DNA of 64,000 nt. Source: Amoeboaphelidium protococcarum X5. Lineage: Eukaryota > Fungi > Aphelidiomycota. Positions within the stretch are counted from its first letter, which is position 1, and every line of letters starts with the position of its first letter. Position numbers and translations under genes: made by a program. Below, in pieces: positions 2,760-13,829 of the stretch. The notes under the pieces were generated by a model. That model searched no databases, had not been told where the DNA came from, and saw only the letters and a list, made by a program, of their open reading frames with translations. The DNA lies in assembly GCA_023515725.1 (NCBI GenBank), contig JALDTO010000098.1, forward strand, positions 646,164-710,163. Reading direction: 5' to 3'.

Positions 2760-3838
2760 TCAGAGCCTCTATTACTTTAGGTAGCCAGCTATTGTTTCAT
2801 ATGATACAAATGTGAGACATGTACCTGGAAGTACGCGTAGGATATTCACGGACATGCCTTTATAGAATCCGCGTATACCATTCGTATTATTGATGATTTT
2901 TATTATTTCAAGTAAGCGTCTAGACCCATTCTGAGAGTGCTTTGAAGTGTCGGCTTGCAATTTGGATCTAACCACTTGATAAGGATAAGTGATCACAGTT
3001 GCAGCGGTCTTTGAACCTGCTGCCATTGCAACGTAAGCTAAAGAACTCTACACACAGCTCAAAATCAGTTACATATTCACAAATGTCAATATCTAATTTT
3101 ACAATCTCTTGGCTAGGATACAAATCGCGATGAACCTTCTTCAATTCTTCGTAGATGCTGAATTGAACAGCGCCATGACTAACACCGAATATAGACGGCA
3201 CCATTCCTTTATAGAGGCCACGAAGTCCTTCTTACTTGTATACTGTTGAGAGCCCGGCTACATATTAATAATAATTCGCATAAATTATACGCGTATAAGA
3301 TCCAACTGCTTACAAACTAAGCCTCTGTATTGGGGATTGTTGTAGTCTTGTATACATAATCGCGTCTTCATTAACCATATAGGATTGGTCATGAATGCCG
3401 TAACAAGGCCAGCTTCAAACGCAGCGATCATGTGATCAGTGGCACTTAATTGATGTGACACAGTGGAGTCATCAGCCCGCCGCTCATTGTTCCGAATCAT
3501 CTAGTTCTTAAGCATGTTGTACCATAAAAAGTAAAATCCCCATGACAGAGTACTTCCAGCCATGTTTGCACTCAGGCCATAATACAAGCCTTTGGGTCCA
3601 TTCTTTCGGTATAACGTCTTTACCATTTCCAATGAAGTTTAACGATCAAGTCCAACTACAATCATTTGATCAATCACTATAGTCTTTGCATATCATACTA
3701 CCGATCTAAGCTTTATAAAGTACCTTAGAGTCGCGTTTTAATCAAATCCATCGGGTGAAGACACAGCGTGGTGATGACTGCTGCCCCAACACCAGCAATA
3801 GCGTGATCTGTAGAGTTGAATTGTGCAGTTGAAGACAT
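2760..3838 (-). CDS. Mitochondrial carrier, FAD/folate transporter type (FLX1/SLC25A32-like), several short introns
   Basis: Three carrier signature repeats: [10 protein letters not shown](TAA=Q), [21 protein letters not shown]. Also [16 protein letters not shown] and [17 protein letters not shown]. Confidence 0.85.
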
Positions 3839-3882
3839 ACAAAGTTATATAAATTGTTATTATTATTGTTTATCTTTTACTT

Positions 3883-10544: not shown

Positions 10545-11696
10545 ACTAAGTGAATATCACACTACAATGCAATCAGCGATGATAATATAGAAATTGATAG
10601 ACGATAGGACCAGAGAAGGTCAATCGTGGACTGTGGTGTAAGTATTCGTCATCCATAATAGAGTCAAAGAACGGTAAACGAATCTCTGACTGTTTTGTGG
10701 GCGAAAGGGCGAGCGTGAAATTTCGATCGCGTGTGGCACAGCGAATCAAAGCCGCATTTTACGCGCGCCCATTTCAAGATGTTTCGGATTCAGGTAAGTT
10801 ACGATCAATGTTGTGGATAATGCCATTTTTAGAAAAAAAATTATATTCGAACGCAGAGTGCAAATTAGGATGGATATATACTGCAAACTGTAATTTAAAG
10901 CTTATGCGTATCAGGATATTCATTTTCAGCGGCGGAGAAATTCTCTAGCCACTCCTTATCCTGAAATATACCTCATCAACGTGACAATACTTAATTACCT
11001 GCTTCTGTAGCAAAATGCCCCTTGAAACGTCCCCGTGCTACTTTGAATTTGATGGCCTGCCTGAATTCGTCTCGCAATTTGATTGTGCAGCGACATATCC
11101 TTTAATCTCTAATATTTTATCTTGCAGTCAACGATTATATTGCAGTTTTTACTTGTCAGTCACCATTTTTAGCGAACGCAAGGAGTGGTATCCTTGAGGC
11201 ATACTCAATCCTAGCACTCAAGCACGCATCAGAGAGTTCAAAGCTTTCGCTGATCCGTCCCCTATTTCAAAATAGGCACATTAAGTAGCAAACGCAGCTT
11301 AATGTCAAGCGTGTGAACCTTGAGCGTCGGTCAGAGAGAGTGTGAAGGCTCATGGACTGCAAAATGTCGCTCCCATACATGTGCACAAGAGTCACTTTAT
11401 CAATCATGAGTTGACTTCTGCCCCACATCCAACAATGGCACGTAAATACTCTTAAACCAATCCAAAGACTAATAGCAACGATGACCTGATTCTTCCAACT
11501 TAATATTCAGTAGCCATAATCGTCCTACATATAAATTGCAAGTTACAGAAGAGCGAAGCAACGCGCTAAAAACAATATATGTCCTACCTAGAAATTCGAG
11601 TCACATGCAGAAGAAGCTATATACACGAGACTTGTTAGTGTCAACTACTTAAAAGAATAAATCAATAAACTTATCTCAAAGTCAAATTGGATACTC

Positions 11697-12943
11697 ATGA
11701 ACTCGACGTAACGGAGCTTTGATGTTGCAAGGAGCAGAAACAAAGAGGCGCAGCAAAATTTCTCCTTATTAAAGGGCGACGGTTAGGGTCGGTCGGTGCC
11801 TGAAAATGAGTAAAGTGTGTCCCAATGCCGTGGAACGTAAACAACGCAAAGCCTGCCGACAATGGGCCGAAACATCGACCGGGAGATTATATCTCGTACA
11901 CAGCAATTGGATTAGTTAGATTTAATTTGTTGTGATAAAATTGAAATATTAGAACAAGATATCGCTACGAACAACTCCACTTATCGCGTAATTAGTTATG
12001 AGGGCGGATTTTACAAGGCTTGGATATGTAATGACTAATAAGCTGAGTAGCTGAGAAAGGCAGTCAGGGACTATAGCAAGATCAATTATATAAGTTCTTT
12101 GATGGTGCAACTTTACGCGTTAGCCTATCTGTCTGGTGATACTGGAATAACTAGAAGCAAGTCGTCACCTACGCCGGATCAAAAAATGCTGAGAGATACT
12201 TATCATTTGTTTTGCGTGGGGCATAATCGCAGATCAACTTTGCGTCAATCAGTTGAATTGCACTCACTCTGTACTAAGTTATTCTCAAACGATGCCATGA
12301 ATGAATCCTTGTAAGTCCAATGTAATTCCGAGGTGTTTACGTACCTTTTTTAACCAGCTGCTGATAGATTTGGCGTGGCATGTCAAAATCATATTGTAGA
12401 TAATTTCAGAAAGACATTGAGACGAGTCGTCGTGATTGATTTGAAAGATTTTGGATTGGGTACTGTTTATAAACTGTGCGATCTGGCTAATCTGGTGCTA
12501 AGACGGCTGAATTTGATTTAAAACTTTGGCGATTGCACTAATTTGAGTGATGCTCTTCGTAGTATTTCAAAAAGGGACAAGAATTTAAGCAGGAGCACGT
12601 CTCATTACTAGAATAAGTCAGGCAGGGCTACCTGGAAGAAGTAATCGATATTAAAGAGTAACTGTAACAAGATTTGACTCGTTAATAAGTTACTTATCCA
12701 CTTAATGTCAGATGTTTTAAGTCGAGCTGGTTTGTTTATTTGAGACTGTTCTTCAGATGTATCCGTAAGCTGGCAAGTATGCATTTAAAATATCCTACTC
12801 TACTGCCTCCACCTGCCAAAATAATGCTTATGGCTCATTTCTCATCCTGCGCTCTGAAGTCCATTGTAGGAAATTATACGCTGGACAAGATGTTAAAGCT
12901 ATCAAAACTTACAAAATAGTTTGATGTTGCTTTCTATAGATGA
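11697..12943 (+). pseudogene. Frameshifted, 3'-truncated ORF resembling the N-terminal half of a Fanzor1 (eukaryotic TnpB-family) protein
   Basis: Frame A (TGA-free 11490-12674, ATGs at 11697 and 11862) reads GGFYKAWICNDQQAEQLRKAVRDYSKINYISSLMVQLYALAYL...FTYLFQPAADRFGVACQNHIVDNFRKTLRRVV. After a shift between 12551 and 12674, frame B reads YPLNVRCFKSSWFVYLRLFFRCIRKLASMHLKYPTLLPPPAKIMLMAHFSSCAL to TGA 12941-43. Motif order resembles my recollection of Fanzor1 REC/WED. No RuvC motifs seen. Confidence 0.5.
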
Positions 12944-13829
12944 GTAGAACTTTCGATAAACTGTTTTCCAAGAGAATCAACAAAGGATAATGCGGTTTAA
13001 ACATGGACTGCTTTTGGATCTCACTAACTCAGAGCTGCGCAGTGGGAAGATTGAGTTTTAGCTGGATGATAGAGTCAAACCGTTTTTAGTAGGCAGGACT
13101 GTTGAGTTAACTATCAAGATTACCACCAAATAGTCCAAAACAGTTATGAAAAGCATCGCGCGATTGGTAAACTCTCTCGAGCTTAGCAAGTATAGTTCAG
13201 TCGGTATTACTTTGTTTGAATCGTCGGACTTTGGGTTGCTGAGTCGGCGTGAAGTCCGCCATTTATACGATGCTTTCTATCAGTAAAGAATTAATCTGCC
13301 CCTATTTATCTCTCCAATTGCTCCCAGCAATATTATTCGTAACATGAATCAAGAGTACCTTCGATAATAACTACTTTGGACACTTTTTTAAACATCCTTA
13401 AAGCCTGGTGTTTTGTTATCGATTAATAGTCTGGAAGTTTGTGCTGTATTGGCATCGCTCTTGCGCCATTTACCCAAGTTGCTGCTACAATATTCGCGTG
13501 ATTTTGTTTACTATAGAACTGGTGCTAAACCGATTGACTTCATTTACGATCTGGCTATTTAAGTATAGGCACGAGGACTTATTGATATTGAGTAATTCTT
13601 ATTCCTACATCTGCTTCCTGCTTTAAATTCGGTTCCGATTAAGAAGGTGTAACTGTTCATCAATGGCGTAATATCGCGACAGGCTCTGACACAAAACATA
13701 TAGCAACTGTTTCTAATCGATCCTCAGAAGACCAAAGTTGAAATTTTCTAGCGATACTAAGGTAATCGATACCTGCTGTAAGATTTCATTTTGCTGTCTG
13801 CCAACCATGACACTGTTAATGGCTTCTGA
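12858..13829 (+). pseudogene. 5'-truncated paralogue 1 of an unrecognised secreted-protein family
   Basis: TGA-free frame aligning by eye to the C-terminal ~60% of the two downstream paralogues (LLLDLTNSEL, IDFIYDLAI, HLLPALNSVPIKKVQLFI, QDFILLSAN). Lacks the signal peptide and N-terminal block. Confidence 0.75.

Follow-up and report, generated by a model that had tools for sequence, protein, structure and literature searches.

Fanzor1 nucleases, among them SpuFz1 (8GKH/9CEU), GtFz1 (9CER) and PpFz1 (9CF0; Saito 2023, PMC10432273), are proteins of about 700 aa in REC-WED-RuvC-zinc-finger order, with an alternative RuvC-II Glu placed six residues ahead of the zinc finger, and they are carried by non-autonomous, multi-copy elements with broken copies and internally deleted derivatives. 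In Chlamydomonas, Fanzor1 genes are borne by Helitron2 elements (CRe-1/2/3; PMC3627910, PMC10530073) that are likewise non-autonomous, with hairpins at both ends, one-ended truncated copies and no transposase. A transposon family of the algal parasite Amoeboaphelidium protococcarum, which is known to read UAR as Gln (PMC5304391), resembles both systems in these features, yet departs from each in others. We found it through a relic in a 64-kb window (the whole stretch of DNA analysed, 64,000 nucleotides) and searched the assembly of this species (23.6 Mb, 346 contigs) for further copies, distinguishing subfamily A, to which the window copy belongs, from subfamily B, which includes intact genes. 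Unlike described Fanzor1 proteins, those of subfamily B are written in code 6, have DLG in place of DPG and [AV]D in place of RD, lack TDG, and carry an acidic linker of ~75 aa before RuvC-I; sequence identity between the two is very low and apparent at profile level only. The B element has no TIRs, and 2.8 kb separate the end of its ORF from the right end, so that an omegaRNA at that end would not lie directly behind the stop codon. In CRe copies the retained end is the one downstream of the ORF, along with the RNA, and in A/B copies it is the upstream one; and where CRe elements have 7-19 bp TSDs and introns, A/B elements lack introns and regular TSDs, and target sequence is deleted at their insertion sites (659 bp; ~26 bp). 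We put at roughly 85% the probability that the window stretch holds a dead, 3′-truncated copy of a non-autonomous transposon with a divergent Fanzor1-like nuclease in the TAR=Gln code. The relic itself is ordinary transposon debris, and its value is as a pointer to this subfamily of Fanzor1-like proteins.

Long TGA-free frames rich in TAA and TAG run throughout the window. The features of the relic and its surroundings, by window position, are as follows.

11162..12933, plus strand: 3′-truncated transposon copy of subfamily A, the left 1.77 kb of the element; absent from the homeologous locus on contig C158, both junctions mapped
11162..11189, unstranded: left-terminal hairpin, with which the element begins; fold z -2.8; same end in 7 aligned insertions
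11162..11457, unstranded: left module, conserved and structured, with 95-98% identity to its subfamily B counterpart; may serve as an end signal, a non-coding RNA (omegaRNA candidate 1) or both
11967..11969, plus strand: lost start codon, ACG in the window, ATG in the sister copy and in subfamily B
11967..12573, plus strand: part 1 of the Fanzor1-like ORF relic, about residues 1-202 of the intact relative; REC; code 6
12569..12573, plus strand: frameshift site, a run of 5 A in the window and 6 A in the sister copy
12575..12931, plus strand: part 2 of the Fanzor1-like ORF relic, about residues 203-322, comprising the end of REC and the start of the second WED part; shifted frame
12929..12933, plus strand: GCTTT microhomology common to element and host at the deletion joint, from comparison of the window with the C243 sister and the C158 homeolog
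12934..13829, plus strand: surviving 3′ part of a host gene; homeolog intact (~530 aa), 659 bp of the 5′ part gone

The earlier note had described a TGA-free frame with a shifted continuation and three N-terminal blocks in Fanzor1 order, and both observations held. The frame spans 11490-12677 (326 codons counted from the ATG at 11697) and is followed by a shifted frame that closes at TGA 12941-43; the FYKAW block begins at 12009 (with TAA TAA at 12036-41 and TAG at 12048 in the translated frame), the YLF/PAADRFGVAC block at 12342, and the YLRLFFRCIRK block at 12737 in the shifted frame. The limits it had given, 11697 and 12943, had to be moved. The homologous start is at 11967, where the 75-aa NCBI stub KAI3631897.1 of the same species also begins with its homologous Met, and in the sister copy the frame after the ATG equivalent to 11697 shifts and meets a TGA; the element itself begins upstream at 11162. 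At the other end, homology stops at 12933 and the final codons to 12943 are host DNA, and since the frame closes at the TGA there, an in-frame fusion with the host gene was ruled out.

What is left of the coding region amounts to ~320 codons and would encode the N-terminus (REC/WED) of a Fanzor1-like nuclease. Part 1 is 47% identical to residues 2-207 of the intact 711-aa B ORF (E 2e-56) and part 2 is 45% identical to residues 203-323 (E 2e-33); because both parts match the same intact relative at these levels, chance resemblance is ruled out by sequence comparison. The window copy carries three lesions, namely the change of ATG to ACG at 11967, the loss of one A at 12569-73 and the deletion of the 3′ part, with everything past residue ~322 of the intact relative gone. 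It is a dead pseudogene incapable of making a nuclease, although its left module may still be transcribed. Both flanks match the homeologous C158 locus at 87-91% over kilobases, and C158 has no insert. The window allele of the interrupted host gene is a pseudogene as well. The insertion falls in the first codons of this gene (homeolog L003 807-~2400, C158), whose intact homeolog opens with a hydrophobic stretch that by eye resembles a signal peptide; paralog-like genes lie downstream, from 14616.

In a DNA search of the genome, subfamily A consisted of the window copy and a single sister on contig C243, which is 90% identical, carries TGA lesions of its own, and extends the homology to B as far as RuvC-I at 42%. 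The flanks of these two copies differ, so they are not homeologs. Two internally deleted derivatives of the element lie on C181 and C155. Subfamily B shares the left 300 nt of the window copy at 95% identity and has three full copies of ~5.7 kb (on C192 and two on C155), 95-99% alike, against the 1.77 kb of the window copy. The earlier idea of intact copies elsewhere in the genome was borne out: two of the three are intact code-6 ORFs of 706 and 711 aa with a D-E-D triad, and the third has one frameshift. Of three partial B copies, those on C244 and C214 are truncated, while that on C130 is a short match beginning at its contig edge. Three truncations that arose independently, in the window copy and on C244 and C214, lie no more than ~130 nt apart; this is compatible with premature termination of one-ended transposition or with a fragile site. 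For the full element on C192, comparison with an empty homeolog on C221 shows the left-flank match stopping at the first base of the hairpin and resuming 44 bp later, 18 bp beyond the right end of the element. One of the C155 insertions was also found in a 2013 environmental sequencing run.

Several further loci are related at a distance. C179 and C235 carry 70-82% identical fragments of a third subfamily, and C212:694981-696873 has a weak N-terminal match to A/B with a PF07282 match 1.9 kb downstream on the same strand, which is probably a further full-length related Fanzor. A Fanzor-like ORF at L033 427-1726 (C179:251068) has DLG and an acidic linker like A/B and no alternative Glu; it is possibly nuclease-dead. 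Directly behind a Fanzor of another family of the genome (family D), a B-like RuvC remnant (33% identity) lies at L026 977-1354 on the minus strand (C13) as a nested insertion, and at L023 ~2960-3850 (C155:1148 kb) a decayed integrase-like segment of LTR type splits one of the deleted derivatives, with another Fanzor adjoining.

The intact B proteins have a triad of D466, E636 and D674, with the three acidic residues at correct spacing in all three full copies and D466 also kept in subfamily A. E636 stands six residues before C643 of the C4 zinc finger, the alternative Glu position of Fanzors (PMC10711439), and the superfamily pattern D-X(125,275)-[TS][TS]-XX-C4 (PMC3627910) is present as D466, TS 639-640 and CxxC-x17-CxxC, a pattern absent from the truncated window copy. 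PF07282 matched the B copies at 26.1-26.2 bits, over the cut-off with neighbours. Other published signatures are altered. RuvC-I reads DLG in B and DMG in A; D674 is kept at RuvC-III and is preceded by V or A; and the TDG motif of the WED domain, which the earlier note had expected downstream of the relic, is absent even from the intact copies, where the aligned position reads TSDL or TSEL (STDL in A). The DPG motif is not universal among Fanzors, as family D has DVN at RuvC-I yet matches SpuFz1.

Family D and four metagenomic relatives served as the reference for membership. The family D profile had a single strong PDB match, SpuFz1 (E 2e-18), and its predicted model had SpuFz1, GtFz1 and PpFz1 as top Foldseek matches (E 3e-7 to SpuFz1 and GtFz1). 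Family D itself is Fanzor1-type and has only local similarity to B (E 2e-4), from which it differs in its canonical SDG and RD, its lack of an acidic linker, its annotation in NCBI and its use of TAR for 4 of 21 Gln codons, compared with 29 of 53 in B. Against the family D profile, two colinear domains of an intact B protein (B18) together gave 40.9 bits, where the highest of 300 shuffles reached 2.0; the relic, with X at the break, gave 10.0 bits (best shuffle 2.6). With three viral Fanzors added to the profile, the scores were 52.1 bits for B18 (shuffles 3.4) and 13.8 for the relic (shuffles 8.2, next 1.7). The N-terminal domain alone scored 24-25.5 bits (B18) and 9.6-13.5 bits (relic) on Fanzor1-like profiles that are one step removed from SpuFz1, above shuffles in both cases; hhalign gave a probability of only 38% (E 3e-4), and in the full-length alignment all three N-terminal blocks fall on conserved Fanzor1-type segments. 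Stop-free pieces from the window or from family B had no significant match in PDB, Pfam or the ESM Atlas, and a wide structural search with the model of one short piece (109 aa, pLDDT 49) gave no informative one. The earlier assignment of the relic as a Fanzor1-type N-terminus is therefore supported indirectly, by its 45-47% identity to copies with RuvC and PF07282 and their colinear Fanzor1-like alignment: evidence from the relic alone is modest, and the chain from relic to B to reference family to SpuFz1 is strong. The sequence comparisons likewise support an enlarged Fanzor1-type REC region in A/B. In a tree of 13 rows, built without named Fz1, Fz2 or TnpB references, A/B was monophyletic (99/99) on a branch of length 1.89; because B departs from the published signatures and sits on a long branch in this small tree, its sequence is best described as that of a Fanzor1-like variant and not a textbook member.

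Both ends of the element could be defined, as the earlier note had proposed to do, while the TSDs it had also proposed to look for did not appear with any regularity. The right end has a subterminal hairpin followed by 15-20 nt and terminates in TTAG, and its last ~98 nt recur at at least 25 loci. Many copies of this quasi-palindromic end (L018 8682-8779) lie at contig ends, clustered on C135, C150 and C166, and some lie ~210 bp from other PF07282 matches; they may mark a larger family or an autonomous partner. We found no TIRs and no recognisable transposase in the element, nor any autonomous partner sharing its left end in the genome search, so the partner transposase suggested earlier did not materialise. 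A 113-aa ORF near the right end was considered as a transposase and set aside, as it has no family match and occurs just in the three B copies; a 7-bp TSD at L014 was rejected too, as it overlaps microhomology and was not seen elsewhere.

In the mechanism that we propose, intact copies would bind an omegaRNA that one end of the element encodes, and the RNP would cut the matching empty site, so that repair tends to retain or copy the element, in line with proposals for TnpB and Fanzor. The window copy would owe its form to an insertion that was aborted, or to later deletion at the microhomology, with loss of the 659 bp of host gene as well, and would have decayed since. That the relic is instead an assembly chimera is barely credible: the genome is repeat-rich and the window junctions are known from assembled contigs, but both flanks are colinear with the homeolog, and the copy has private lesions and differs by 10% from the one sister it has. 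It is also very improbable that the gene is not Fanzor1 but a separately acquired, rearranged TnpB (D-phi-G with the alternative Glu) or a Fanzor2-like gene. DLG is a TnpB signature and TDG is missing, as such an origin would have it, but the B protein is 700 aa long, its N-terminal 270 aa align with the Fanzor1-type REC region at 24-25 bits on their own, and pattern scans with A/B pieces, in which TAR was disallowed for Gln, found no relatives in 185,579 prokaryote genomes or in viral and metagenome contigs. Of the same ancestry, yet different in function, would be B proteins that are nuclease-dead or weak RNA-guided DNA binders kept for regulation or as a help in transposition. Their DLG, the loss of TDG, [AV]D-QL instead of RD-xN, the acidic linker and the long branch would all suit such a role, as would the 2.8 kb between ORF and right end and the DLG relative at L033 that lacks the alternative Glu. 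The correctly spaced triad in all three full copies and the D466 shared with subfamily A count against it, as does the example of Cas12a, which has DAD at RuvC-III and is active, and we consider it unlikely. By analogy, subfamily B is probably an active nuclease.

For the carrier, the end structure and the Chlamydomonas precedent point to a rolling-circle, Helitron2-like enzyme acting in trans, which we regard as a reasonably good prospect. As in Helitron2 (PMC3627910), there is a 5′-terminal hairpin 0-2 nt from the end and a 3′ subterminal hairpin, here 15-20 nt from TTAG; the lack of TIRs and of a regular TSD, the one-ended copies and two embedded pieces of 51 and 55 nt that occur elsewhere in the genome, apparently captured, would fit as well. 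Another end-hairpin element, with a different HUH enzyme or a different transposase, is nevertheless a possibility of some weight, as the ATIR (8-15 bp) comparison matched the left end to the right hairpin arm imperfectly only, with one base gapped, none of the four Helitron_like_N loci in the genome lies near an element end match, and the insertions share no common target sequence. No single TAM emerged from the insertion flanks, with GTC three times, TTCA twice and others differing. The left hairpin comes in two loop variants, of which the short-loop form (L015, L018) follows TTCA in both cases and the long-loop form (window, L014 and L017 among five) follows GTC in three of five; this is a hint of end-encoded target choice from numbers that are too small.

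The search for a 3′ omegaRNA, also suggested earlier, located none: three candidates in A/B lacked convincing covariation and an Rfam search had no match. As candidate 2 we considered an 84-nt block that lies ~200 nt inside the right end. It shows 88% conservation in an A-derived copy, where homology then stops; its fold is no better than that of shuffles, and it doubles as the tail of a 124-codon frame. An apparent covarying stem to its right was discarded because the L022 sequence there is another repeat. Candidate 3 is the right-end hairpin pair (z -2.2). Candidate 1, the left module, is much more conserved than the ORF (95-98% identity of the left 300 nt across subfamilies whose synonymous sites are saturated), forms stacked hairpins (z -2.5) and is kept in every truncated copy with a mapped end. 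It also had the deepest contigs (440-560 compared with 0-70 over the ORF) in two uneven-depth runs of unrecorded type and strand, plausibly the dual RNA-seq PRJNA753980 of PMC8657485; one such contig continues 106 nt into the flank, and DNA runs were flat. Contig depth is a poor measure of expression, and as contigs give neither strand nor ends, we treat this as a lead only. These features would fit a divergent layout in which nuclease gene and omegaRNA point away from each other, the omegaRNA being transcribed outward on the minus strand from the left end, and truncated copies act as guide donors ("ghost" loci), and variant pairs in the module include 6 G-U on the minus strand and 3 on the plus. 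That difference is not significant, however, and there are no compensatory pairs; the 98% left-end identity may reflect a recent end swap, the 84-nt block near the right end is also conserved across subfamilies, and described Fanzor omegaRNAs all lie 3′ of the ORF. We consider this layout doubtful, and slightly more doubtful still the fuller picture of an active, code-locked, aphelid-restricted Fanzor1 offshoot whose truncated copies would supply minus-strand guides from the upstream end in trans to the few intact nucleases. If the left-module RNA did prove to be a guide, the layout would be new for TnpB/Fanzor.

Adaptation of the element to TAR=Gln, proposed from the relic, was seen directly in the intact gene. 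An intact B ORF has TAA or TAG at 29 of its 53 Gln codons, and the relic has them at 12 of 21 (9 of these 12 common to the sister copy); the share is 59-69% for the three host genes compared and 4 of 21 for family D, which is also GC-richer, so that GC may contribute to its low TAR use. Under code 6, dS between A and B is saturated with dN of 0.47-0.50, and dN/dS is 0.15 for relic part 2 against B and 0.39 between intact B copies; by these substitution rates, the ORF evolved under purifying selection in code 6.

For visibility to standard-code mining, the earlier expectation that intact copies would be missed stood for the A/B subfamily and failed for aphelid Fanzors generally. In the standard code, the longest stop-free piece of the C192 copy is 79 aa and that of C155 is 123 aa, an N-terminal piece without RuvC, leaving no RuvC-containing piece above 100 aa; the mining of Jiang 2023 took as input translated ORFs over 100 residues and annotated proteins. 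Among 1.84 billion protein representatives, the 123-aa piece found no full-length protein and just a 109-aa stub, which stops at the first TAA, and the 75-aa NCBI stub, and exact look-ups of the stub P0002 and of window 12102-12311 returned no record, so the A/B subfamily looks unrecorded as protein, although the collections searched may leave out records of this genome itself. On the other hand, the genome has 41 PF07282 matches, family D (P0010, MP228_002407; L024-L032) is annotated in NCBI with PF07282, and file 3 of the Saito 2023 supplement (PMC10432273) includes at least two Amoeboaphelidium occidentale proteins, of 1219 and 232 aa, and may list A. protococcarum as well; aphelid Fanzor-like proteins are thus already in a published table, and aphelid Fanzors as such are not hidden. 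A literature search found no paper naming Fanzor together with Amoeboaphelidium. With its departures from Fanzor-defining motifs, A/B adds to the range of sequences known for eukaryotic OMEGA nucleases and offers two intact candidates. Within this one genome, Fanzor families differ in their TAA/TAG use (19% in D, L024-L032; 55% in B, L016/L018; 59-69% in host genes), a difference that could serve as a clock of residence time, or time since arrival, and could be used to ask whether mobile elements become trapped in a recoded genome.
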